Notes under the pieces: generated by a model
The model's database searches: none
What the model saw: the letters and a program-made list of their open reading frames with translations, nothing else
What the model was told of the DNA's origin: nothing
Translations under genes and position numbers: made by a program
In this document: positions 5,806-59,902 of the stretch, piece by piece
Numbering within the stretch: position 1 is the stretch's first letter
Layout: each line of letters begins with the position of its first letter
Source: Takakia lepidozioides
Lineage: Eukaryota > Plantae > Bryophyta
Reading direction: 5' to 3'
Assembly (NCBI GenBank): GCA_030704615.1
Contig: CM060731.1
Span: 12,586,001 to 12,650,000, forward strand
DNA length: 64,000 nt

Positions 5806-8307
5806 TTCACTGTTTTATTTCAAGGTAAGTCTTACTACCAACGGCAGCCCCTGACAGAGGTAGGTTCTGTCCCTTTGTGTTCCGCTCAAACTGGGCTCGG
5901 GGTCAATGGCCACAAGGCGGCGGCAAACAACGTCTTATGAGGACATTCTCTCTCACACATGAGATTTGGGGACCATAGATCACGAGGATCAGTGGCAGAC
6001 AATGGTTGGACCATTACAGATCTGTTTCCTGTGGAGAATGGTCTGTGTCCAGTGCACTGTATTAGTTTAGGTCATGTGGGTACAATTGACAATCTTCTCC
6101 TTCAACATGAGGCAACCTTCAGGGGTTGGGGCTAGAGATACAACACCGTCACAAATGTCATATGCAGAATTTGCATGTGTACTGCTTCAAACTGTGGCCA
6201 TCTTCCGGCTTACAATGTTTCTAGCAAGGTTGCGAGCCCTGCCACCCAAATAGCTATCAGCCCGGGCCTTGCAACCTCTATCAGATTTGCAAATTCTGGT
6301 CTCAAGACTTCCTGTTATCCAACTTCATTGAGCGCTTCGTTGCTTCCCTACTGCCACAAAATACAGAGGGTGTGGAAATTTTGTCCAAGCACGACCACAA
6401 CAGATGCATCAGACAGGAGCTGATACTTCATGTCAGCTGACCATGGAAACCACCCAATCTTACAACAAGACTGCGGGTTTATCCAGAGTCATTCTTGGTC
6501 CTCTGTAGAATCTTGCAGCCCAACTACCTGTCTGCAGCTCTATCTCCACCTCTTTTAAGGGGGTGGGCTCCTACAGTCTGGGGATGGAGACTGGTAGGTG
6601 GGAAAACCTGCAGCATGAGGACCACCTGTGCCTCGCTCACGCTGAGGATAACAGGGAAATCAAAAATGACATTTCTTTACTCGCTGTCCTTTCTGCATGA
6701 GGCGTTGACTCTTAGACAATCCGTCTAATTTGTACCATCAGTGAAGTGCAGACAGCATCATTTCTTCTCATGGCTTGTGTACTGTCTAATAACGATTGCA
6801 CTTTCCAAACCATGCCACATGCATCAAGTAAAAAAGAATGCTTATAAGATCTGGGGCAGATAATGGTGTCTCTTTAGAGGTTTCTTATCCCTGCAGAAAC
6901 AATTATGAGAACCCAAAGTGCTTAGCAGCTGACCTGCAAGAGGCAGTCTGCCTCCATACAAACTTAAGCTTTGAGTTGTTCTTTGGTTAAGTGGCCCTAC
7001 TGTTTTGCTGTTTGTGGTTGTATGTTCTGTTCTTGTATCCCTTTTGGGCTGCTTATGGGGGACCCCTCTTTTTCTTGTTTTTTGCTTGCTCTTATCCCAT
7101 AAGCTCTTTGAGCTTTCCACGGACGTCATAAAGTACCATGTCATTTCATTTCTCTCTCTTTCTGTGCACAAATATAATTTTTTCTCGCTCCCTTCGCGTT
7201 CACCCAAACCCCCCCTTTTGTCAGTCAAAACTGATAGTTCTAGAAACCCAGAGGGGCCACTCAACTCAAGACTGCATTATTTGGCAGAAGGGAAAAGTTG
7301 GACGACGCTTCTGGAGGGACAAAGGGGAAGGAGAAGACAAACAACGTGATGAGGGACAAGCAGCAGCCATGGACGTTGACACCGGTGAGGGTGAGGGGCA
7401 GATATCCTTTGATAGTCTTACAGGAAGGCAAGTTGAGGAAGTTGGCAGTGTGAATCCAGTGAAAGACTTTGAGGCACTCTTGGCACGACGTGATAGTGAT
7501 GACTGGATACCCAAAGCGGTGCAAGGCATGAAGAATATAATCCGTGATCTTTTGGATTCAGCTTATAATGGCAACACATATGAGAAAGCTCTTGCGTGCC
7601 TGTGTGCTCTCCGCGCAGGTTGTGTGGTCCATGAGGTATGGTTTCTCATTGGTCAACTCATCGTCTAGTTTGATTGTGAAAGGATACGAGTGCACGCTGG
7701 CTTCTATCGACAGCAATTGGCAAGCACAGTGACAAAATTATTTTGTAGTATGGCACAAATGGTTTAATCCACAGCCCCCAAATTAAACCAGTTGCTGTTT
7801 TGCAAACATTAACATGAAGACATTTTCGGCCATGTTCCTAGCAGGAACCTCAGGAATTGAACAATTTTCTGCGGGATTTGGCGAAGAAATGTCGAGGGAA
7901 GCGGCTGAATGACTTTTGGGAGCAGATTGTCGGAAAGGGAGTCACTCTTATTTCCAAGGAGGAGGCACCTGACAGGTATGGTGTTCCATCACCCACAATA
8001 ATGTGTCAAAATGCATTTGCCACCAGTTCTACGTGAAGTAGGGGGGAAAGAGGGAAGTATACTGATTGACACATTGCCCATCGACCATTGCCTGTCAGTG
8101 TTTTCCATGATGTAATCTTGACAGCATAGGCCCCCAGGATCTCAACCCTCTGTTTGTGACTTCTGTTCTGTTTGGCAAAACAGTGATGTCTTGCCAGAAG
8201 AAGCTGCAGCATTCCTGGCTGGTGGGAAAGAGGGAGGAGAAGGCCCTCAAGCAGCCCCTGAAGATGAGATTGACGAAATGGAAGCACTCCTTGGAGAGGC
8301 TATGTGA
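28..8307 (+). CDS. KU80: Ku80 (XRCC5) NHEJ DNA end-binding subunit, 12 exons, ~718 aa
   Basis: Hand-spliced GT-AG exons 28-42, 695-787, 904-955, 1268-1399, 1719-2122, 2498-2784, 2980-3175, 3532-3738, 4474-4641, 7288-7635, 7845-7975, 8184-8307 give 2157 nt in one frame. Peptides MARSKETLVLLLDVS, DFLDAIVVGIDM, VWVYKK, YKYGHQYVPIS, FYFNVIPFADDMREFPF and NPVKDFEALLARRD match plant Ku80 (vWA, core, C-terminal domains). Confidence 0.96.
1400..1718 (+). other. U12-type (minor spliceosome) GT-AG intron in Ku80
   Basis: 5' splice site GTATCCTT at 1400; branch-point-like TTTCTTAAC at 1697-1705, 13 nt before the AG at 1717-1718; no polypyrimidine tract; splicing restores the conserved DFLDA peptide. 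Confidence 0.88.
4243..4420 (+). repeat. Two tandem 3'-end copies of LINE family 2 (motif ccataagctctttgagctttc...tttctctc)
   Basis: Same ~100-bp motif recurs at ~7042-7195, 46464-46575 and 48287-48400, and more degenerately at ~50895-50940 and ~58540-58575. Confidence 0.75.
4940..5805 (+). mobile_element. 5'-truncated non-LTR retrotransposon (LINE family 1, RTEX-like) with (CT)n(CA)n tail, in Ku80 intron 9
   Basis: Degenerate ORF2 C-terminus with TRLKFKLRVGSLPL and zinc knuckle CPLCGQPEDNIHFLIHCPGY; stop codon in CTTATGA followed after ~7 nt by a (CT)n tail. 5' boundary approximate. Confidence 0.8.
5806..5957 (+). mobile_element. Second short 3'-end copy of LINE family 1, abutting the tail of the previous copy
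   Basis: Near-duplicate of ~5625-5775, ending ggccacaaggcggcggcaaacaacgtcttatgaggacattctctctc. Confidence 0.8.
5960..7200 (+). mobile_element. Degenerate non-LTR retrotransposon (LINE family 2, RTE/RTEX-like) remnant
   Basis: ~6567-6700 translates to GSYSLGMETGRWENL...HLC with frameshifted HFFTRCP, the ETGRW/zinc-knuckle C-terminus of RTE/RTEX-type ORF2; ends in the family-2 3' motif at 7042-7195. Confidence 0.6.
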
Positions 8308-10624: not shown

Positions 10625-11940
10625 GTAGGTACCAATGGGACAGGGAATCCAGATTCCAGGTAATCTCTCGGAATGAGAGCTGTCAGTGAATCTTGCGGAA
10701 CTCTGCCCAGATATTTATAAAGCCCCGGACAGGTGTTTCAAATCCGAGACAACAGGTAAAAATCCTGGCGAAGTTTCCAGGACTGCCCTCCTGCTACACA
10801 GTCCGTAAGGGATCAAGGGGTCTAAAATCCTGGAGAGTTGTGGTCCTGGATTTTACCTCTTCCAAAATTTAAGTAGCAGACAACAGTCCACCACCCTCCT
10901 CAACTTCTTTTGTCGGTACACAATCCAGGAGCTTTCTCAGCAACTCAACCACTCCCTCTTCCCTCTTGTCCTGATTATTGGCATGATACTTATTCCAATT
11001 ACATTGGTGTTTCTCGACCCGACCAACTCCTGGACGGTGTCCTTTGATCCGGCGCAACTCCGGCCAAAGCTAAAGCCAAAGCCGGTTATGTAAACAAGAG
11101 CCACTTCACCTCATGGCTACTCTCCCTTGTGGGGGTGGACTGTAGACAGCCCTCCATTGCTTTAGAGGAGCTGGTTCCCAAGGTACCCAGACCCTTAGAA
11201 AAATGTGGGCACAGGCTTCTAGGGATCTAGGGAACCGGGTCAATGAAAGACTGACTTTTACCCACGTGTTCTGACTTGTGTTCATGTTCTGAAACGTGGG
11301 ACAAGGGAGGCTTGGGGCCCAAGGAACTTGATAGGGTAGCTGGGGCCCTATGGCATCCTTGTTTATGTTGCTGAAGCTCCGAGTGCATGGGGCCCACTGT
11401 GACAGCGCTGAGAAACTTCTAAGTTACTCTTGATCAGGCTGTGGTGATGCTAGATCGGTTTGATTTGCTTTTGTGGATCTCTATATTTCGCTTTGTTTAT
11501 GGGGTCTTTTGTAAAGCTGTACAGAGACAATGATAAGTACAAGGTGGGATGTTTGCCTAGACAGACTAAGGCATTGCCTGGAGTACCAGCAGCAGAGGTA
11601 AAAGGGAGCAAGGACGTCGGTTGTAGATGTTGCAATCTGATGTGGGTCCCGCACGGCTTCACCGGAGCCGGATCCAAACTGCATGTCAAGTGTCAGGGCA
11701 CAGAGGTGCCACCGACCTCCTTCTCATATTTGTACCTTCCTTCTCTTCAATCTCTCTCTCTTTCTCCATCTCTCTCGTTCTTCTATCTCTTCGGTTCTGG
11801 TTCCTAGGACTAGTTGGGTCTCCTCTGGGATTCGGAGGTCGTCTTCTTCTTTCGTCTCTCTGTCTCTGCTGCAGCTGGTTGTCTGATCCGACGTGTCTAA
11901 CACGAAGAACGGGGGCTCGTCCTTTCAAATTAGTATCCCC

Positions 11941-14410
11941 ATGGCACATGTTGAGAGGGAAGCTACCGCCCCGGGCAATGGATTCAGAATGATGGAGATG
12001 TGGACGTTCGTGGCATCCATTGCTGGGTTGTGGGCATTCTTTCAGCATCTGATGCCACCTGAGTACCGGAACGTTTTAGAGGTTTGGGTCAAGACTGCCT
12101 TCAACTTCCTTTCGCCCTATGCTTTCTTCGATGTTCCCGAGTTCTATGGAGCAGGTGGCAACGAGATCTATGACTATGTGCAAACGTACTTGAGCTCTTC
12201 CACCGCCATTTCTGCCCAACACGTCAATTTGTGCCGGCCCAAGAATGCGAGTCAGAATACCTTCTCATTGGCCAACAATGTGTCGATCCAAGAGAAGTTC
12301 ATGGGGGCTCCTTTATGGTGGACCCATCACGTGTCTGAACGCCAAAGTAACCACATCAATTGGAGTGACGATGCAAATGATGAGAAGCGCACATACACTC
12401 TGAAGATTCGCAAGTCCGATAAGACTAGAGTTCTGGAACCTTATGTGGAACACGTTTTTACGACAGCCAAGGATGTGAAGGAAAAACAGCGAGACAGACT
12501 CCTCTATACCAACGTCGCGAGCAGCGGGTATGTCTCTCTCCCACTCGTCTTCAATCCTTTCTAGATAATTCATCAGTTCATGTCCAGGCGAGTTTTCATT
12601 GGGAAAGATGTATTAAAGGACTTCAGTAAGTACTTGCGAACCTGTCAGGAGCATTTATAGATTAATCAGCTGGTATTGTTCGATGTCTAGACTCTTCCTG
12701 ACACATCAGTGGCACTAAGGAACTGCCCTTATGTCCAGAGTAACTCTCGCATCATGGACTGTGTTTTTTGTAATCTTGAAGCAACGCACCTCGAGTCACT
12801 CTTGGTCTTCAAGTAGGCAGACAGGTAATCGTGACTGGGCTGATCTTGCAATTTTTGTACATGGGGAGTTCTAGGTAGCTGAATGGACTTACCTGATGAG
12901 ATAGTATCTTAGAAGTATCCATTTGATTGCAAGTGCAGTACCTAACGGGCGGTCCGTGTGTTGTAGAAGATATAAGCCCCGCGTATGGGAGTCGGTGCCT
13001 TTCAAGCACCCTTCGACATTCGACACTCTAGCCATGGACCCAGAGCTTAAAGCAGAGATAAAGGAGGACCTTGAGGACTTCACCAAGGGAAAGGAATTCT
13101 ATCAAAGAGCAGGAAAGGCTTGGAAACGAGGCTACTTGTTGTATGGGCCTCCTGGTACTGGCAAATCAAGCATGATAGCAGCCATCGCCAATTTTCTTCA
13201 TTACGATGTGTATGATGTTGAACTCACAGAAGTAAACTCAAATTCTGAGCTGAGAAAACTGCTAATTCAAACCACCAATCGTTCTGTCATTGTCATTGAG
13301 GACATTGATTGCTCCATCGACCTGACGGAGCGCGCCAAGGCCCGCAAAAAGGAGGCAAAGCCGAACGCCGGTAGCAGGATGCCTGGCCAGCCCGACAACC
13401 CCGAGGTCAGACTTCTACTTCTTCCTCCTCCGCGCCCTTTCAAATTTGAAGGCATATCTGCAGAATTAAAGCTTTTCCGTCAATTCTCTTGAAATTCTCT
13501 CCAGATGCAGTGATCACTGAGATGTCACGCAGTCATTGCATTCAGGAAAGTGCAGATCTATTTACATTCTCAAGTGTCAAGGATAGGTCTGTGACTTGTG
13601 TGACTTCAGCTGCACATAACCGTTTTGTTGGGTTCTCTTGGAAAAAAGTATCCCTTTCAAAGCCGTAACTACATTAAAATACTGCAACTGCAGTTCATCT
13701 AAGATCTGGGTACCGACACCAATTCAGTGAGATCAGCATCTTTGGCAAAAGAATGGCAATTTCTAGTATTGAAACCGTATATTCTGATCTTTCAGGAATG
13801 ACCAGATTCCTGAAAGTCGATCCTCAACCTGTACTCGACTAGCTAATAACTGGATCGTGAATCAACTTGAACAATATAACCAATTTTCTAGACGATTCTG
13901 ATCAACATGTGCGTGCAGGTGAGCAAAGTTACTCTCTCAGGCCTCCTCAACTTCACAGACGGGCTGTGGTCGTGCTGTGGGAGCGAGCGCATCATCGTCT
14001 TCACCACCAACCACATCGACAAGCTGGATCCTGCGCTGCTGCGGTCGGGCAGAATGGACATGCACATTCACATGTCGTGGTGCTCCTTCCCCGCCTTCCG
14101 CGTGCTGGCCCTCAACAACCTCCTGCTCCACGACCACCCCCTGTTTCCGGCCCTGGAATCCGCCTTCGCCGGCAAGGCCATCACGCCGGCCGACGTCAGT
14201 GAAATTCTGACGAGAAAGAAAAGAGACCCCACAAATGCGCTCGAAATCCTCTTGGAATCCCTCGCTACCACAAAGAACATTTCCGACCTTCCGGCGCCGG
14301 CTCCGGCTGCCGCATTAAACGACGACCAAACCTCAGAAGACGACTCGCCCCCGACGGATGACAACTCCGACGAGGTGGCCCCGGAAATTAAACCGGCCAC
14401 GGAATTGTAA
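11941..14410 (+). CDS. BCS1-like plant AAA-ATPase (AAA_assoc + AAA domain), 3 exons, ~505 aa
   Basis: Exons 11941-12527, 12967-13405, 13919-14410 (1518 nt, in frame; alternative ATG at 11989). Motifs HPSTFDTLAMD, KRGYLLYGPPGTGKSS (Walker A), IVIEDIDCS (Walker B), VTLSGLLNFTDGLWS, FTTNH, DPALLRSGRMDMHI. Confidence 0.95.
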
Positions 14411-17695: not shown

Positions 17696-19462
17696 GTGCA
17701 AGTTGTTTCCTTGCCATTGTTGTGGGACACGATGGAGGAGATGTATGGAGCCACCAAGGAGCCACGAAGGTACTCTGGGGCGGTGGGCACCATTGAGTTG
17801 GATGATTTTATCCAAGAGTTTGATAGTTGGTGTGACTTGCAGCAAATGCGCAATCCACAACTGTTTACACCTTTCATGGCATGGAATGGGCTGTTTCAGC
17901 ACCTTGAAGGGCCGCCCATGGATGATTACCATGAGTTTAGACGGGGGCACGATGTTGAGATCGAGGAGTGGAGGATGTACTGGTCACCCGACTATGTCTC
18001 CATCACTAGAGGCACTAGAGGCACTAGAGGCACAAGGGCAGCAGCCACACCGGCAGCTGCGCCAGCAGCAGCAGCTATAAGAGCAGCTTCCACGAGTAGT
18101 AGTGGGACTAGTGGTACATCAACTACGACGTCCACCCAAGCTGCTGCTGCACCAGCACCAGTGGCGGTGCCTGCCTTCAATCCTGTTGTGGAGAAGTTGA
18201 GAAGGAACTACCAAGGGGTGAGGATAGAGAAGTTGAGGAGCTTGCAAGAGTTGCAACGGAAGCCTACTGAGAGCTTGAGGGAGGCTTTCACTCGCATGAG
18301 GCGCTTGATTAATGTAACCCAAGGGGTTACGGAGGCTCAGGCAGTCCAGTTCTGGTACGGGATATTGGACAAGGAGCTGAGGAGAAGGGTGTGGGATGCA
18401 ACTCTCCTACGAGTGGCCCAACCCACCTTAGCAAATGTGTTTTTGCTGGCAGAGCGGATAGAGCTCAACATGGTGGAGGAACGAGTGGTCATGGTGGGAT
18501 TTGCTAAGGAGGCACCACGGGGTAGTGGTGCTCCTAGCCAGCCACTACCTCAACATGCTCAAGGCAGCAAGGGGGCTCAGGTGAAGCCTAGGAAAGGGCA
18601 GAGAGGACCTCAGATGCAGGGGTCTCTCCCTTCATTTGCTGGCCAACAACGGGCGGATGTGGTGTGCTGGACATGTGGAGGACCCCATGTCAAGAAGGAT
18701 TGCCCAGAGGGAGGCAATGGTTTGGCACCGGCACAACCTGCACAGGTGCAGTGTAGGCATTGTGGTAGGTACGGGCATGGAGAGGCCCAGTGCTATGGTT
18801 TGCACCCTGAGTTGTGCCCATGCCAGTTCGAAGGGAACAATGGTGGACGTGGGCAAGGTGGAGCAGCCCAGAGAGGAGGAGGTGGCCAGAAACGAGGTGC
18901 AGGCCAAGGGCAGGCTCAACATGGCCAAGGACGCGGAGGTCAGGGTGGTGACCAAGGCATGGCCGACCGGCTTCAGCAGCTAGAGCAGAGGTTCGCTGCC
19001 ATGGCCACAGCTCAGGTGGTACCGGCTCCAAGGCTGGATGGTCCACCTCCTGCTCCTGAGGGAGGAGACTTAGGAGGCATGGGATTCATGTGCGGGGCAG
19101 CACTACCACTAGTAAGGGGTGCCACTACCACTACCACTATGGGTGGGGCACCACTACCACTGGTGAGGGGTGCCACTACCACTACCACTGTGGGTGGGGC
19201 ACCACTACCACTAGTGTCGAGCAGTACTACCACTACCACTATGTGCGGGGCAGGATTACCACTAGTGCAAGTGGAATCCGCTGCGGCAGTGACTCGAGAA
19301 GCAGCACGAGTTCCTGAGCCACGGGGTGTGGAGGTGGAGTTGGATCCACAACGTGGGGAGGCAAGCCGTCAGGCCAGGCTTCCTCAGTCAGTAATTAATT
19401 ACATAGCCCGCATTTTTGCTACGACTCCGGAGTCGTTGACCCCACTTCTGCCCACCGTCTGA
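17696..19462 (+). CDS. gag: Gag of the Ty3/gypsy element (C-terminus reads into inserted sequence after ~19390)
   Basis: 588-aa ORF with retrotransposon gag-type core (LQRKPTESLREAFTRM, QFWYGIL) and zinc knuckles CWTCGGPHVKKDC and CRHCGRYGHGEAQC. Confidence 0.85.
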   Translation: MQVVSLPLLWDTMEEMYGATKEPRRYSGAVGTIELDDFIQEFDSWCDLQQMRNPQLFTPFMAWNGLFQHLEGPPMDDYHEFRRGHDVEIEEWRMYWSPDYVSITRGTRGTRGTRAAATPAAAPAAAAIRAASTSSSGTSGTSTTTSTQAAAAPAPVAVPAFNPVVEKLRRNYQGVRIEKLRSLQELQRKPTESLREAFTRMRRLINVTQGVTEAQAVQFWYGILDKELRRRVWDATLLRVAQPTLANVFLLAERIELNMVEERVVMVGFAKEAPRGSGAPSQPLPQHAQGSKGAQVKPRKGQRGPQMQGSLPSFAGQQRADVVCWTCGGPHVKKDCPEGGNGLAPAQPAQVQCRHCGRYGHGEAQCYGLHPELCPCQFEGNNGGRGQGGAAQRGGGGQKRGAGQGQAQHGQGRGGQGGDQGMADRLQQLEQRFAAMATAQVVPAPRLDGPPPAPEGGDLGGMGFMCGAALPLVRGATTTTTMGGAPLPLVRGATTTTTVGGAPLPLVSSSTTTTTMCGAGLPLVQVESAAAVTREAARVPEPRGVEVELDPQRGEASRQARLPQSVINYIARIFATTPESLTPLLPTV

Positions 19463-25892: not shown

Positions 25893-28443
25893 ACCATCTA
25901 CTCAATTCGGAACCGAGTGATCACCAAGGCATCTCCAACCAAGACTCCTGAAGAGATTTGGTCTGGTAAGAAGCAAAGTGTTGATCATTTTAGGGTTTTT
26001 GGATGTAAAGCTTACGCTCATGTTCCAAAAGAAAAAAGAACCAAATTGGAGCCTAAGAGCGTGAAGTGCATTTTTGTGGGCTATAGTGAAGAAGCGAAGG
26101 GATACAAAATGTTTAATCCAAGCACGAGGAAGGTGTTCCTTAGTAGGGATGTGGTATTTGATGAATTCAATACAATACAAGGACATGAGCTGAAATCTCA
26201 TGGTGACACAAAATTGTGGAATCTTTGGGATTTATTTCCACACGATGAAGAGAGATTGCAAGAAGTAAATGTGCAGATTGATCTTGACGACAAAGAGTCG
26301 ACATGTGATAGCATTGCAGATCGTGATGATTTGAGAACAACAATCGAGGAAGATTCATATAAAGAGGTTGAAGCAGTAGCCTCTCCATCTGGACGATCAC
26401 CTTGAGTAGGAGCAAATGAATACCTCAGTTGCCTGGACAATATCAAGGTAAGAACTCAAAAGCCTTCACTAAAAGTCCGAGAAACCCTAGGTCATCCGAT
26501 GAGTTTCTCAGCAATTACCGTACCTGGAAATGTTGACGAAGCATTGGAAAGTGATGCTACCAGATGGACAACGGCTATGCAAGCAGAAGATGACTCTCTC
26601 ATGAAGAATGGAACTTGGATACTTGCTGATCTCCCGGCAGGTAGGAAGGCAATAGGCTGCAAGTGGGTCTTTGCTATCAAGTACAAAGATAATGGGACGG
26701 TCGATAGACTAAAGGCCAGATTGACAGCCAAGGGATATTCACAACGGGAGGGAGTGGATTACTTTGATACTTTCTCACCGGTTGTGAAAATGGCGTCAGT
26801 AAGAACGTTGCTGGTTCTTGCAGCAAAACAAGATCTGGAGATACACCAAATGGACGTTAAAACAACATTCCTAAATGGTGATTTGAAAAAAGAGATTTAC
26901 ATGCAATAGCCCGAAGGTTTCGTTATTGAGGGAGCCGAAGGAAAAGTATGCAGGCTCAAGAAATCTCTGTATGGATTGAAGCAATCCTCACGAGCTTGGT
27001 ACCAACGAATCGATCGGTATTTGTTGGCTCAAGGGTTTCGGAGTGAAAAAGCGGATTCAAACGTTTATGTGAAGCGAGCAGCAAAGTTGTTCGTCATCCT
27101 TGCTTTGTACGTTGACGATGCAATACTGATAAACAACAATCTAACCTTTCTTAATGAGGTGAAGAAGGAGCTCGCTGAGAATTTGAGATGGTAGATTATG
27201 GGGATATTAGCTACTGTCTTGGAATCCACATCATCCGAAACATGGAGAAAAGGACAATCCATATCAATCAGAAACGCTACTTGGAGAATGTGTTGCATGA
27301 ATTCAAGATGGAGGATTGTAAACCTATAGGCATACCCATGGAAGCAAACTCGAAGTTGTCCATTGATACGTGTCCAACTTCAGCAAAAGAGCAGGAGCAG
27401 ATAAAGAGAATACCATATCGAAAGGCCATAGGTTGCCTTATGTATGTAGCTATTCTCACAAGACCTGATCTTGCCTTTGCTGTAGGTCTGTTTAGTCGCT
27501 TTATGGAAAATCCAAGTTACTTCCATTGGGCTGCGGTCAAGTGTGTGTTCAGGTATATCAAACGCACTATTGACTTTGGTATTACATTAGGCACAGATGA
27601 GACATGTAGCAAATCTGGGATTTTGTAAGGATATTGCGATTCGGACTATGCAGGGGATATGGATGCAAGGAAGTCCGCATTCGGTTACTGTTTTACCTTG
27701 AATGGCGGGGTTATTTCCTGGCACAGCAAGAAACAAACAGCCACGGCCCTATCAAGGACAGATGCTGAGTACATGGCTGCCACAGAAGCTGCCAAGGAGG
27801 CCATTTGGTTGAGGAGATTACTCCATGACATTGGAATAAAACAAATTGATCCTCTCAACCTCAAACGTGACAATAAGAGTTGCATTGCACTGGAGCCCTA
27901 AGTTTCCCAAGTTTCACGGAAGATCCAAGCACATAGCAACTCAGTTTCACTTCGTTCGAGAGAAAGTGGAGGAGGAAGAAATTATGTTGGAATACTGTCC
28001 AACTAAATTGCAGGCTGCAGATATTTTTACCAAGCCGCTGCCAAGGGCAAGCTTTGAATTTCACAGGGAAAAGCTACAAATAAGGCCTCTAAGTCGGGTT
28101 GAAAACTGAGCACAAGTGTTAGAATGTGCATTTATTCTACCCTCTGACAACTCTCCCATATTTGTAGGATTAGATCAGGTCTTGTTACCTATCTACGACA
28201 GTGCTTAATTGCACATTGACGGTGATCCTTATCTCTTACTATGAATAGCGACTAGAAGCTCAGCCTCTCCACAGAACTCTCATTGTATATAACCTGTTCA
28301 TGCTTTCCGTTATCAACATTTTTTGCACTCTTGAGCATACTGTTCTTTAGTATGTTGTCTTCTTCTCACCGCCTGGTCATGTGTCTGAATCTATTGTTGC
28401 TGTGAGTGTCTACAGTAGCTTTAGATGTTTATGTTTTCCAACA
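25893..28443 (+). mobile_element. Ty1/copia pol remnant (integrase C-terminus, RT, RNase H) with tentative 3' LTR 28117-28443
   Basis: RVFGCKAYAHVPKEKRTKL, SRDVVFDE, KARLTAKGYSQREGVDYFDTFSPV, HQMDVKTTFLNG, LYVDD, YRKAIGCLMY, CDSDYAG, SKHIATQFHFVRE, ADIFTKPL; several stops and frameshifts; TGTTAG...CCAACA after RNase H. Confidence 0.93.
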
Positions 28444-54811: not shown

Positions 54812-55353
54812 ATTATCTTCACAGCCCTACTTCACATTTCCTTCTTCTTAACCTGTGTTCGTCTCCCTCTTTCTGGTCTCTCACTTTGTCCTTCTCTCCC
54901 ATTCTACCTTTGTGCTTCTCCTGTAAGCGGGCCCCCTAACCAAACTAAGTAGCTGGATTTTACACTGTTGTCTTTGAAGCATGTGGGCAGAAGAGTAGTA
55001 TATACCTTCAAAAATATTATGTGGCATACAGACACATGCTATGTTCTCTTTGCTCTTTCCTCCATCTCCTAGTGTGTGGAGTTGCACACCTGCACGAGGT
55101 TAGCAAGAAAGACTAATATGCAACCAATTTGGTGTAATTCATACAACAAGCATCAGGCTTAATCTGCTCACCAACGCCTAGAGTCATAGACCCACAGAAG
55201 CATGTCCATGACGTATCCTCTCCCCCCCTCTCTCTCTCCAGTGTACACCATGAGCCCCATCCATCGACAGCACGAGTTGGGGAGGTGGGTGGTCCAGCAA
55301 TTCACCCTAGTAGCACCTCAATCACCACAAAACACCCTCTAGTACAGAGGCAG

Positions 55354-58300
55354 TCATTCATCTACCTCGTCGATTATTGTACTTGGGCACAAAAATTCCT
55401 CATTGGAGAGGCATGTGTTGAAATCCTTGCCAACATGGCTGATGTTGTATGGAAGATCCTTCCGGGGGGGTGCAACTGATCCGTATGCAATGAGCTGCCA
55501 GGGTACAAGGGTGCCATCGGCGTTGATGCTCTCCATCACAACCTCCACAATAAGGTCTGGGCGTTGTGCCAAAAGCCTCACACCTTGTGTTGTGACCTTG
55601 CAAGCTTGCACCCACAAGGATCTCAAGCATGGGCAGCCAAGTGCGAGCATGGCCATACCTGCACCATTGTCAATGACAGAGGTGAGACTTGCTCACTCTA
55701 ATATGGAACTCCTACAGATATTGATAGAGATATCAAAGAGGCTTTTCCTCATAAATAAAATCGAATCTCCTAACAAAACCGTGGAGGCAAGACACATACT
55801 CGAATCCCCAAATGGGCAATGTCGAAGCTCTAGCTTCCGTAGCTTCACACAGCCAACAGCTATGAAGGCAAGGCCTGCGTCGCTGAACCCACAATTGGTG
55901 AGAGTGATGATGTGCAGGTTGCCTCCATACTCGCCAATATGACGCATACCCTCATCGTTGATCACCGAATTGGACAGCCCAAATCTGCTGAAGCATAGTG
56001 CTAGTCTCCGTGCCTTTGGACACTGCATCAAAATTGCCTTGATTCCATCATTCAGTGTTGACTTCCCTTCAAGTTCAATAACCTGCAGGAGAAGTGCATC
56101 AAAATAAAGTGTCAGAGGATGCCTGCACTTGGAGGTTCAGAACCCATCCTGATATCTTTGCATGACAGCTAAAACTGTGTTCCCAAGCTCAGAATACTTT
56201 TCTGTATTCCCAATTGTTTTTCTAAAGACCTGTACTGTATCCTCATTGTAAATTGGAATCCCTGTCGCTCAACCTCACCCCTCCCCTTTTCCAACCCTCA
56301 CAACAAGCTACCTGTAACGCACAAAACTACACTGTTTCCTCTAGTAAACAACATACACGCACACTGATACAAGCAAGACTTAGAGGATTAGGACAGGAAA
56401 CAGACAGGGTGAGATGGGTTGTATTTTTGAACAAGGCAGATGCGGATGTCCTTGAGGTCAGGGCAGTTGATCGCAAGTGTTTCAAGAGCTTCATTGGTCA
56501 TGTCAGCTGCATAGATGATAATCTTTTCAAGCAAACTGCAACCCTTGGCCACTGCCATGAGTCCATGTTGTGAAACAAAGCCTGCATCGTCTTGCTGGAC
56601 CACCAGCCTTCTCATCAGCTTGCAGCAGCTACCAAGAACTTGGAGCCCGCTGTCCCCGATGATGTCTGTGGCCTGGAAACAGTAACCGTCAATCAGTACA
56701 TCACCCAATGATGTATCCTGCATGCATGCAGATATAGGCACAACAGGTTGATTCCTCAACACATCTGCAAGGAACAAGAAACATAGGACCAGGACCAGCA
56801 AGCCACCAGCTAAGAACACAATCCAGGAAAGAGGATTAAGTTATGTGAACCCTCTGTCCACACCAAAAAAGCATAGATGCTGCTTTTGAATGTGGAGAAG
56901 ACAGCCAATTGACGTATGAGCCCATGCTGCCTTTTGTGCTGCTCAGCTATAGGTTAATGATTGTGGACCATTCTTTACCTGAAGGTCCTCCAGATTGAAA
57001 CAAGTACTAAGTAATTCACAGACTTCAGCTTCGCCAAGCAAGGCATATGTTAGATCGAGTCTTGTAAGGCGAGACGCTATGGGCATCAACACCCTCACCG
57101 AACCTTCATCAAAGTCCCAAAGCCCTGATATATCTCTCAAGCCCTTGCACCTGCCAAATGCCTCTGCCACCTGGTCGGGATTCTCATCCATTTGCGAGTA
57201 AAGTCTGCAAAGACATAAAGAAGAAGAATACCAACTAAGTAGAGGTAGATACACCAACGATGGCAAATTCACACCACAAATAACATCATCCAAGTAGTAA
57301 CAGCAACAGATGTTGGATGTAACTGCAGCCCAATGCGCACATGAATGAGTGAATTATTCGCACGGTTCCTGGATTGCCATAATATGGAAGAGCAATCCAA
57401 GGAATGACATACAAAAGCAGCCTACACCAGGACAGTTGGCCTTGACTGGCGAAGACATGGTCAAAGACATACATCAATGTGAGAACCTAGTAGAAGCCAG
57501 AGGAGAGATTGAATGGAAGGTCTACACCTGAGCATACTAACTAAATGCATAAAGAGTCCCATATTTAAAAACCAACTTCAATCAACCCATCCACCAACAC
57601 ATCAGGAACTGTAAGACCGAACCACTGATGCATGCAACAACACATGCCAGCAAGAAAAGGAAAGAACAGGAAGAGAAGAAAAAAGTTAATTCTAGCCAAC
57701 CTTCCAGCAGTTGAGGTGACATGAGAGTTACTAAAGGAAGATCAAGACAAACAGGGAACAAAAACCTGGCTATAGCAACAAAAGTGTGACGGCCATGAGC
57801 AAAAAGGGGACCGACCCAATGCCAAGGTGGCAGACAGTATTAGCCGCAGCTTGCAGTATGGGCAACACTCGGTCAACCTGCAAGGATTCAGTCAATCTGA
57901 GGGTATGACAGCGGGTGGCCAGGTTGGCAAGACTATTCATATCAACATCCGCCAATTCTGTGAGTGACATATCTAGCACTTGAAGTGATTTTGCAGTTTC
58001 TGCCAGAGTTGTAAGCCACTGAATAGCCCCATAACTGTGAACTACAGCTTCTGCCAGGTTCAAAAAAATCAAGTTCCTGCAAAACATTTGTGCCACTGGT
58101 TACATCCCACAAGCTGATGCAACCTCTAAATTATCAAGAGCTCTGCTGTGGTTGTAACTATCATAGCAGGGAGAAGCTGCAGACTATGTTTCGTTACGGG
58201 AATAATCTGCTAGAATTCTCTTGCAGGTAACTTGAACCAAATCTGAATATGCAAATCCATAACCACAAACACACCACCTCTGAACTGAGGCTTGAAGTGT

Positions 58301-59246
58301 AAGCTGTCAGTCACTCAAGCTTCGGCAGCACTCATCCTAATGAGTTGACGTGCGGGAGTTCCCCGACCTCTCTGTGCTATTCTCTGCTGGAAAGCCATTC
58401 TATGCTCTTAAGCTTTGAAGCTTGTGGGGGACAGCAAGTTGGATGCCATATATACCTTCCCCTCCCCCACCCGTGACTTGTGCTCTCTTTTAGCCTGGCT
58501 GTTTGTTCTTAGTTTGTTAGGCATTTGTGTTTAAGGAATCTCTTGGCTTCCTGTAAACTTCAAGTTTTATTTCTTTCTTTCTATTTATCCTCCCCATTTC
58601 TTTCCTTCTAAGTACCACTTCTGACTCAAACTCACCAAGTGTTACCCCCTATTCAGAAACTACCCAGTTACAATTAATTTTTTACTCCAGACATGAACAA
58701 ATCTCTTTCTCTGTAGATCTAGGTGGAAGTGACCCACCTGCAAGTCCTGGCAATGGATAGAAGACCTGCAGTGCTGAAACCAATGCATTTTTCCAACTCC
58801 AACGACCGTAAACTCTCTCCACAGACACTCACCAAGAGTGCAATATCAGTATCCGTGATGAACATGCGCTTCAGCCTCAAGTGTGTCAACGTCTTGTAAT
58901 TTCTGGTAAGGATTTCGACCCAAGGAGTGGCGTACGCCCCCCAAAGTTCGGAATGGGGAATGAGTGAGAAATCAACAATCCGAGGTTTGCCTTTAATGGT
59001 GATGGACCGCGCATTGGGAAACCGAGAAGCAAGGGTTAAGGGTCTAATGCCATAGCAATTTGAGACCAGCACTGTGTGTCGTGTGTTGCCCTCCAGATAA
59101 TTTAAGCGCTTGCAGACAAGTGAGATCACATTGCGGTCTTCCGGACGATCGACCAGCTCAATCACCTTCTCCAGGATTTCATCAGGAAACGCCAACAGAT
59201 TGCTAAATGGTTCCTCATTGCAATCCCTTGTCAACCTACCAACCAT
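55354..59246 (-). CDS. TIR1/AFB-COI1 family F-box-LRR protein of neither canonical class (XFB-like / orphan), 6 exons, ~616 aa
   Basis: Exons 59246-58738, 58076-57816, 57204-56979, 56672-56406, 56082-55800, 55658-55354 (1851 nt, in frame, all GT-AG). F-box FPDEILEKV...DRNVISLVCK; KGKPRIVDFSLIP..WGAYATPWV; LKRM; MTNEAL; LRKLELRHCPFGD; LRSLWV; YGSVAPPRKDLP. Confidence 0.92.
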
Positions 59247-59827
59247 GCACATGTGGACTGTCATTCTTCGGTTACACCCTCTAGAAAGTTAAGTGAAGCA
59301 CCGTACCAAACAGAGACTTTTCACGTCTCCATGGAATTGGGTTCTTACTCTTTCTGTTGTGACGAGCAACAATGTAGACCACATTGTTGTCTACAAAGAT
59401 TTCCCTCAGGCCCTTTCAGCCGTTACGCTTTTTCCTGGCACGCCCCCACAACAACGGTCCCTTTCTACCCCTCTCTCTTCTGCCTTTCCACTACAGACAC
59501 ATGCACCCCGAGTGTGGCAGTCTTTCCAATTCTGCCTTGCAATCTAGAACTCAATTCCCACGAAAACTGTATTCCATCACCCTCGATTTTCAGAATCCTG
59601 TACTTCCCTCTTGCCTGCTCCTTTCTGCTACCTCCTTCGCTCTTCGCGTAACTTACTCTTTCACCATCAGAACCACGCCTCCCATCCCCACGTCGAAGCT
59701 TTCACCCCTCAGCCTATCGTCTTATCCATGCATCATCTCCCATGCCTGCCTCAGTCATCACGTGCAATACCTCCGGGCATCACACACCCCCCCCCCCCCC
59801 CCCCCACCCACTCTCTCTCTGTCTCTC

Positions 59828-59902
59828 AATGGCCACAAGGCTACGGCAAACAACGTCTTATGTGTACATTCTCTCTCTCTCAATATCTTCTCTCTCTCTC
59901 TC
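59828..59902 (+). mobile_element. LINE family 1 extreme 3' end embedded in (CT)n
   Basis: aatggccacaaggctacggcaaacaacgtcttatgtgtacattctctctctct with CT runs on both sides. Confidence 0.8.

Follow-up and report, generated by a model that had tools for sequence, protein, structure and literature searches.

We analysed a 64,000-nucleotide stretch of the genome of the moss Takakia lepidozioides (GenBank assembly GCA_030704615.1, contig CM060731.1, positions 12,586,001 to 12,650,000; the whole stretch is referred to as the window) and found on its minus strand, at 55354-59264, a gene with six coding exons for an F-box/leucine-rich repeat (LRR) protein of 616-622 amino acids. This gene very likely encodes a moss XFB, the XFB clade being the third lineage of the TIR1/COI1 family in land plants, and its product would be an adaptor of SKP1-cullin-F-box (SCF) ubiquitin ligases with an inositol-polyphosphate (InsP) site and a non-canonical pocket. 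Transcription and splicing of this intact gene were confirmed, and it evolves under purifying selection.

Relatives and phylogenetic placement

Family searches and the prediction of a protein complex were run per exon, the fold was predicted for the full-length relative P0153, and the joined model of 622 amino acids was used for local alignments, trees and the ratio of nonsynonymous to synonymous substitution (dN/dS). Exon 1 matched the Pfam families Transp_inhibit (4.5e-17) and F-box_5 (4.9e-12) as well as the solved TIR1 (1.7e-37) and COI1 (1.1e-34). TIR1 could be aligned with exons 4, 5 and 6 over its matching parts, and COI1 with exons 4 and 5. The domains of the TIR1/COI1 family, namely F-box_5, Transp_inhibit and a TIR1-like LRR solenoid, are all represented, the solenoid fold being that of P0153.

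When 1.84 billion representative proteins were scanned with exon 1 without a profile, P0001 (613 amino acids, 65% identity) was the best match and only ten matches fell below 1e-30. A word search with P0001 as the query yielded a set of moss proteins, several transcriptome contigs among them. Identity to the window model was 69.5% and 60.6% for Ceratodon purpureus proteins, 55.8% for Sphagnum and 62.9% for a partial protein of Physcomitrium patens. The next full-length match was P0005 of Selaginella moellendorffii (39.8%), whose cluster holds the UniProt entry D8TEP2, "Uncharacterized protein XFB". TIR1/AFB and COI1 proteins shared 31-39% identity with the window protein, a Riccia protein marking the upper end. 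No closer relative from outside mosses and Selaginella was observed among the best 150 matches listed, in which the Logan/JGI fragment matches P0002-P0004 carry no species label. The window's own protein was absent from the protein collections searched, where the best match was 69.5% identical.

Phylogenetic analyses comprised a careful maximum-likelihood (ML) tree of 31 rows under LG+C20, a quick tree of 53 rows and a third tree with a Coleochaete outgroup. In the careful tree, the window protein was located within a moss clade (support 100/98) that was joined by the Selaginella XFB (99/99), and TIR1/AFB (100/100) and COI1 (100/100) formed separate clades; the quick tree agreed. Across the trees, the clade of moss and Selaginella XFBs received ultrafast bootstrap (UFBoot) values of 97-99 and Shimodaira-Hasegawa-like approximate likelihood ratio test (SH-aLRT) values of 96-99, TIR1/AFB received 100/100, and COI1 received 98-100 UFBoot and 92-100 SH-aLRT, with the lower values in the presence of the long-branched outgroup. 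In that outgroup tree (Coleochaete scutata P0134, branch length 4.4), the three land-plant clades were distinct and no branching order among them was supported, so that the tree neither favours nor opposes the alternative in the original prediction, a relic of the ancestral state. The window protein therefore groups with proteins named XFB, outside TIR1/AFB and COI1, with mosses as its closest relatives, followed by Selaginella.

Within the mosses, the window protein branched outside the Ceratodon/Physcomitrium group and inside Sphagnum, which suggests an early-diverged moss lineage or an old paralogue. Its branch in the careful tree was no longer than those of its relatives. The Ceratodon purpureus XFBs P0153 and P0154 (chromosome 8 tags 8G128600 and 8G134900) were found in two strain annotations and fell into two sub-clades, with the window protein outside both; mosses of the Ceratodon group probably carry at least two XFB paralogues. 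Riccia sorocarpa P0006 (39% identity) was considered as a liverwort XFB and rejected, as it fell in the COI1 clade in all three trees.

The XFB clade was reportedly named by Prigge et al. in 2010 and is said to feature also in Bowman et al. of 2019. Prigge et al. (2020, PMC7048394, citing Prigge 2010) describe it as a third clade of unknown function, with members among the mosses and in part of the lycophytes. In the literature searched, XFB was mentioned by Prigge 2020 only, the term "PpXFB" gave no match and no functional study was found; the clade is not discussed in Mutte 2018 (PMC5873896).

Gene structure, transcripts and selection

The six-exon model was derived from the sequence and the list of open reading frames. 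All introns are GT..AG, and the frame runs through 622 codons without interruption. The features of the gene are as follows.

58738..59264, minus strand: coding exon 1, residues 1-175 plus 2 nt, with the F-box and the first LRRs including loop 2 (open reading frame, GT donor, Pfam, TIR1/COI1 alignments)
57816..58076, minus strand: coding exon 2, LRRs (AG/GT sites; joints in X1 and X2)
56979..57204, minus strand: coding exon 3, LRRs (AG/GT sites; joints in X1 and X2)
56406..56672, minus strand: coding exon 4, LRRs, with the shortened loop 12, Tyr392, Asp413, Arg415 and Cys417 (AG/GT sites; joints in X1 and X2)
55800..56082, minus strand: coding exon 5, LRRs, with the lengthened loop 14, the T-L-T-N segment and a basic R-K pair (AG/GT sites; joints in X1 and X2)
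55354..55658, minus strand: coding exon 6, with Arg534 at the position of TIR1 R509 and the stop codon at 55354-55356 (AG site; joints in X1 and X2; alignment to TIR1)
59076..59198, minus strand: F-box, residues 23-63 (Pfam F-box_5 at residues 25-63, F-box at residues 23-57); predicted SKP1 interface
58938..58994, minus strand: loop 2, residues 91-109, with an insertion of two amino acids (alignments to TIR1/COI1)
56559..56612, minus strand: remnant of loop 12, residues 359-376, with Val362 at the position of the invariant Arg of TIR1/AFB and COI1
55960..56010, minus strand: loop 14 region, residues 452-468, with an XFB-specific insertion
59349..59774, minus strand: 5' untranslated exon (contig pieces of X1 and X2)
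59236..59348, minus strand: alternatively spliced 5' intron, GT..AG, 113 nt, containing all three candidate start codons
55006..55353, minus strand: 3' untranslated region, running on from the coding end in X2

X1 and X2 are public runs from two different studies, and the RNA label of both is a guess. About 0.42 of the words sampled from the stretch occurred in each of them, close to the proportion taken up by exons. Contigs from both runs were at least 99% identical to the window and contained exactly the five predicted coding joints, such as 58076/58738. The spliced state of these contigs shows that the locus is transcribed and its RNA processed, and the intact reading frame claimed in the original prediction was borne out by the six-exon model.

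Three in-frame ATGs are candidates for the start in exon 1, at 59264, 59252 and 59246. The third of these, up to which the original prediction had drawn the gene, is probably the true start, since the N-termini of the relatives (M-G-V-R) lie about 20 residues before the F-box. All three candidates are deleted when the 5' intron is removed, as observed at the joint 59235/59349 in one X1 contig. The intron was retained in X2 and in a second X1 contig, and transcripts bearing a start codon are thus found in both runs. Among the X1 contigs, the form spliced at the 5' intron was the deepest. Its frame is closed upstream by a stop and contains no ATG ahead of the F-box, the next Met in frame being residue 134. 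This start-less form may be a non-productive or regulatory isoform, or an isoform without the F-box.

Further variants were observed in the same runs. An alternative 3' joint, 55089/55366, in X1 removes 55090-55365 (minus strand) from a GT donor within the last four codons, so that the final three residues are replaced and part of the 3' untranslated region is lost. A minor joint, 57875/58736 (minus strand), was present in X2 only, at a depth of 5.5 and with one side counting 21 letters; it points to an alternative acceptor within exon 2, though it may be an assembly artefact. Transcript contigs of both X1 and X2 carry a 6-nt insertion at 59735, and a pyrimidine-rich simple repeat (59775-59900) is located directly upstream of the 5' exon.

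Pairwise Nei-Gojobori dN/dS among three related moss mRNA contigs was 0.08-0.09. Comparisons of the window gene with three moss mRNAs gave proportions of nonsynonymous differences (pN) of 0.23-0.24 and proportions of synonymous differences (pS) of 0.77-0.79, the latter being saturated. Three single-nucleotide differences separated the window from the transcripts, two of them synonymous and one changing Ile to Val. We considered whether the gene could be a decaying or non-functional copy, to which the abundant X1 form that splices out every candidate start codon would point. This is very improbable, as the 622-codon frame is open over six exons, start-bearing transcripts occur in X1 and X2, pN is 0.23 against a saturated pS of 0.77, and the branch is of ordinary length; the pseudogene reading was rejected on the open frame, the spliced transcripts and pN/pS. 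The original prediction had named nesting within TIR1/AFB or COI1 together with hormone-dependent binding of Aux/IAA or JAZ, or else a lack of expression with dN/dS near 1, as findings that would speak against it; we found a separate clade, an expressed gene and purifying selection.

Putative cofactor site, altered pocket and predicted SKP1 docking

Residue claims were checked in HMMER alignments to the TIR1 and COI1 PDB chains, and the TIR1 and COI1 motifs given in the original prediction agreed with the PDB sequences. These alignments bore out its account of the loops. Loop 2 of the window protein has two residues more than that of TIR1 or COI1, with TIR1 K74, D81 and F82 kept, F79 replaced by Ile and H78 by Arg. 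Loop 12, described as nearly deleted with loss of the equivalents of TIR1 F351 and COI1 R348/R351, is six residues shorter than in TIR1 and eight shorter than in COI1; TIR1 F351 and COI1 R351 lie inside the gap, and Val362 aligns with TIR1 R344/COI1 R348. The predicted pairing of a COI1-like Tyr with the TIR1-like motif IRICL was found in Tyr392 (COI1 Y386), Arg415 (TIR1 R403/COI1 R409) and Cys417 (TIR1 C405). TIR1 S438 and COI1 Y444 had been noted as absent from a longer loop, and these positions are occupied by Ala455 and Cys457, with loop 14 longer by eight residues than in TIR1 and by five than in COI1. The motif ITLTNCG, said to replace that of the receptors, places T, T and N at TIR1 S462, A464 and F465.

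The basic residues of the InsP site were likewise mostly retained, as had been proposed, with equivalents of TIR1 K74, K113, R114, R436, R484, K485, R489 and R509 present. InsP contacts of COI1 comprise K79, K81, R85, H118, R120, R121, K144, K147, R346, R409, R440 and K492 (PMC6058352), and the window protein has a basic residue at 10 of these 12. Judging from these residues, the LRR solenoid would still hold an inositol-polyphosphate cofactor against its basic lining.

The hormone contacts were conserved in part. In TIR1, the carboxylate of auxin is bound by R403 and S438, the former also forming a bridge from auxin to inositol hexakisphosphate (InsP6), and the degron is clamped by F82 and F351 (PMC2873998, PMC9403785). 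The window protein has an incomplete set of the TIR1 auxin and degron contacts, with R403, F82 and L439 kept, S438 replaced by Ala, H78 replaced by Arg and F351 deleted. In COI1, R85, R348 and R409 hold the ligand, Y444 forms a hydrogen bond with its ketone, and the pocket is lined by A86, F89 and L91 together with A384, V385 and Y386 (PMC5856746). The positions of the Arg85/Arg348/Arg409 triad and Tyr444 are occupied by R, V, R and C in the window protein, so that the COI1 ligand set is also incomplete.

To compare these traits across the family, we used an alignment of nine moss XFBs, the Selaginella XFB, 19 TIR1/AFB and 9 COI1 sequences. The Arg at TIR1 R344/COI1 R348 was invariant in all 28 TIR1/AFB and COI1 sequences and was V, I, L or E in the XFBs. 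Every XFB had a short loop 12, the insertion in loop 14 was XFB-specific, and Thr at TIR1 S462/COI1 L469 and Ile, Met or Leu at TIR1 F79 were found clade-wide; the insertion of two amino acids in loop 2 was confined to mosses. Arg415 and Arg95 (COI1 R85) were invariant in the XFBs. The XFBs appeared as a mosaic of the two receptors, with Arg360, Asp413, Tyr392, Ala455 and Lys159 in common with COI1, and Asp98, Lys132, Cys417, Arg452 and Arg509 in common with TIR1/AFB. The placement outside both receptor clades and the divergence from both at the ligand contacts, as originally predicted, were supported by the ML trees and the alignments. The description of the protein as an "orphan" receptor, with XFB as something separate, did not hold, because in the trees the gene falls together with the Selaginella XFB and other moss proteins, and its unusual loops and pocket residues are common to the whole clade.

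The top-surface pocket of XFB formed by loops 2, 12 and 14 appears to be unlike those of both known receptors, which makes canonical perception of auxin or jasmonoyl-isoleucine improbable, and XFB probably does not perceive either in this way. A divergent co-receptor for auxin, or for jasmonate or dinor-12-oxo-phytodienoic acid (dn-OPDA), that still uses Aux/IAA or JAZ would be in keeping with the retained equivalents of TIR1 R403, F82, D81, C405, L439 and R436 and of COI1 R85, F89, L91, Y386, R409 and R496, and with the sampled TIR1/AFB set, in which 6 of 19 sequences likewise have Ala in place of TIR1 S438. We regard this as unlikely, since the XFBs form their own clade in the trees, the Arg of TIR1 R344/COI1 R348 is lost, F351 is deleted, COI1 Y444 is replaced by Cys, and TIR1 F79, S462, A464 and F465 are all altered clade-wide.

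We then compared conservation between functional sites and the rest of residues 24-559, counting a position as conserved if at least 88% of the sequences had the same residue there. In moss XFBs, 14 of 16 InsP-site positions were conserved (p=0.004) and 12 of 20 hormone-pocket equivalents (p=0.32), on a background of 52%; this pocket test is weaker than in the receptors because the moss set is less diverged. The corresponding values were 6 of 16 (p=0.36) and 15 of 20 (p=8e-5) on a background of 30% in TIR1/AFB, and 7 of 16 (p=0.043) and 10 of 20 (p=0.006) on a background of 22% in COI1. The moss XFBs gave no positive sign of a specially constrained ligand pocket.

These results bear on two further explanations, which we consider about equally likely. 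It is quite conceivable, if short of probable, that XFB perceives a third small molecule, probably an acid, as a true molecular-glue receptor and recruits its own degron-bearing substrate, in line with the original prediction. The carboxylate-binding Arg (R415) and Arg95 are invariant in the XFBs, the InsP site that supports the pocket floor is strongly conserved, the clade-specific insertions in loops 2 and 14 indicate a surface that was reshaped and not decayed, and the gene is under purifying selection; however, the pocket equivalents of moss XFBs are at background conservation, unlike those of TIR1/AFB and COI1, and little is left of loop 12, by which TIR1 closes its pocket and clamps the degron. 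With a similar standing, XFB could be a ligand-independent SCF adaptor in which InsP is purely structural and the substrate is bound directly or once modified. A conserved cofactor site next to pocket equivalents without special conservation, the short loop 12 and the loss of one of the three carboxylate-holding Arg residues of COI1 are consistent with such an adaptor, and a small molecule is dispensable for most F-box/LRR proteins. The pocket-floor Arg and the Phe of loop 2 are nevertheless retained, and both sister lineages are hormone receptors. We put forward, as a rather doubtful suggestion, that mosses and lycophytes perceive a third hormone-like signal through their XFBs, with an acid held by the two retained Arg residues above InsP as the glue to a substrate that is neither Aux/IAA nor JAZ; the remaining land plants would have lost this system.

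The fold was predicted for P0153, the closest relative, from an alignment of 35 sequences. The model had a predicted local distance difference test (pLDDT) score of 83.4 and a predicted template-modelling score (pTM) of 0.82; the termini, residues 421-423 and the loop-14 insertion were modelled with low confidence. In Foldseek searches with this model, the template-modelling (TM) score was 0.87 for COI1 and 0.86 for TIR1, and at most 0.5 for FBXL2/FBXL proteins and MAX2/D3. For exon 1 with Arabidopsis SKP1A (SKP1A_ARATH), the interface score from predicted aligned errors (ipSAE) was 0.81 in three runs against 0.54 for the best control, a result to be read as likeness and not as binding because the TIR1-ASK1 and COI1-ASK1 complexes have been solved. 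At least 90% of the contacts agreed between runs, the partner pLDDT was at least 86 and the interface comprised residues 20-81. In the benchmark for the ipSAE mark, 51 of 78 solved complexes passed, as did 2 of 108 mismatched pairs. The F-box of XFB is predicted by this model to dock on SKP1, which would make XFB the substrate-recognition subunit of an SCF ubiquitin ligase.

Several points weigh against XFB as an SCF adaptor with a non-canonical pocket. The predicted fold is that of a relative with 69.5% identity, not of the window protein itself, and the SKP1 score may stem from the model's memory of solved complexes. One abundant transcript form in X1 lacks a start codon. In addition, several ligand-contact residues are kept, namely the Arg of TIR1 R403/COI1 R409, the Phe of TIR1 F82/COI1 F89, the Arg of COI1 R85, the Tyr of COI1 Y386 and the Arg of COI1 R496, so that an acidic ligand related to auxin or jasmonates is still conceivable.

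Neighbouring sequence and comparison with known systems

Elsewhere in the window, an exon with a Ku C-terminal-like domain was located at 7138-7668 (plus strand), three open reading frames of a BCS1-like AAA ATPase gene (AAA_assoc, AAA and AAA lid) at 11893-14410 (plus), an open reading frame of 588 amino acids in a GC-rich stretch without a Pfam match at 17696-19462 (plus), and a retroelement fragment with a retroviral polymerase SH3-like domain at 25917-26405 (plus). Among the other proteins encountered, the P0057 cluster (rice Os11g0462900) contains a TIR1-like N-terminal module mid-chain, at residues 673-817, and its members are named "RGA5-like disease resistance protein" and "FBX14-like"; P0101 (Flemingia) is a long protein of 1703 amino acids that also has such a module mid-chain. 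These may be AFB-like modules fused to a nucleotide-binding leucine-rich repeat (NLR) immune receptor, or gene-model fusions.

TIR1/AFB and COI1 are the standard cases of molecular-glue hormone perception, for auxin and jasmonates, respectively. To our knowledge, XFB is the only other land-plant sister lineage of these receptors, and we know of no function assigned to it since it was named in 2010.

The closest known system is the XFB of Selaginella moellendorffii (D8TEP2), with which the window protein shares its clade (99/99), F-box_5, Transp_inhibit and a solenoid of the 18-LRR type. Both show the traits of the XFB clade: TIR1 R344/COI1 R348 is replaced by a hydrophobic residue, loop 12 is short, loop 14 is long and TIR1 S462 is Thr. 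Both also lie within its range of mosses plus a lycophyte. They differ in that identity is only 39.8% and the Selaginella protein is without the moss-only insertion of two amino acids in loop 2.

With Arabidopsis TIR1 (PDB 2P1M/2P1Q), the window protein has in common the F-box, the predicted SKP1 docking, most of the basic residues that contact InsP6, the equivalents of R403, F82, D81 and C405, and the fold as modelled on the relative P0153 (TM 0.86). It differs from TIR1/AFB in belonging to a separate clade at about 33-37% identity, in having R344 replaced by Val, R401 by Asp and S438 by Ala with F351 deleted, in F79 replaced by Ile and S462/A464/F465 by T/T/N, and in a loop 14 that is eight residues longer. 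With Arabidopsis COI1 (PDB 3OGK/3OGL), the fold is again similar, as modelled on P0153 (TM 0.87), and the equivalents of R85, F89, L91, R346, Y386, D407, R409, R440, A442, K492 and R496 are present. It differs from COI1 in its separate clade, in the replacement of R348 by Val, Y444 by Cys, A86 and A384 by Ile, W467 by Ile and L469 by Thr, in the deletion of R351, and in a loop 12 shorter by eight and a loop 14 longer by five residues. The charophyte TIR1/COI1-like precursors (Mutte et al. 2018, PMC5873896; Coleochaete scutata P0134) belong to the same family and also have hormone contacts unlike those of either receptor. The Coleochaete protein is very distant, in that BLAST aligns only the N-terminal 178 residues, at 29% identity, and its branch length is 4.4, whereas XFB is a land-plant clade.

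The XFB clade and the question of its function have been in the literature since 2010, and the window gene does not represent a new kind of system. What is added here is a confirmed and expressed XFB gene model in a further moss, together with a residue map of the clade that can be used for experiments, which shows a conserved InsP site, a substitution of the Arg at R344/R348 and, relative to TIR1 and COI1, the loss of loop 12 and an expansion of loop 14.

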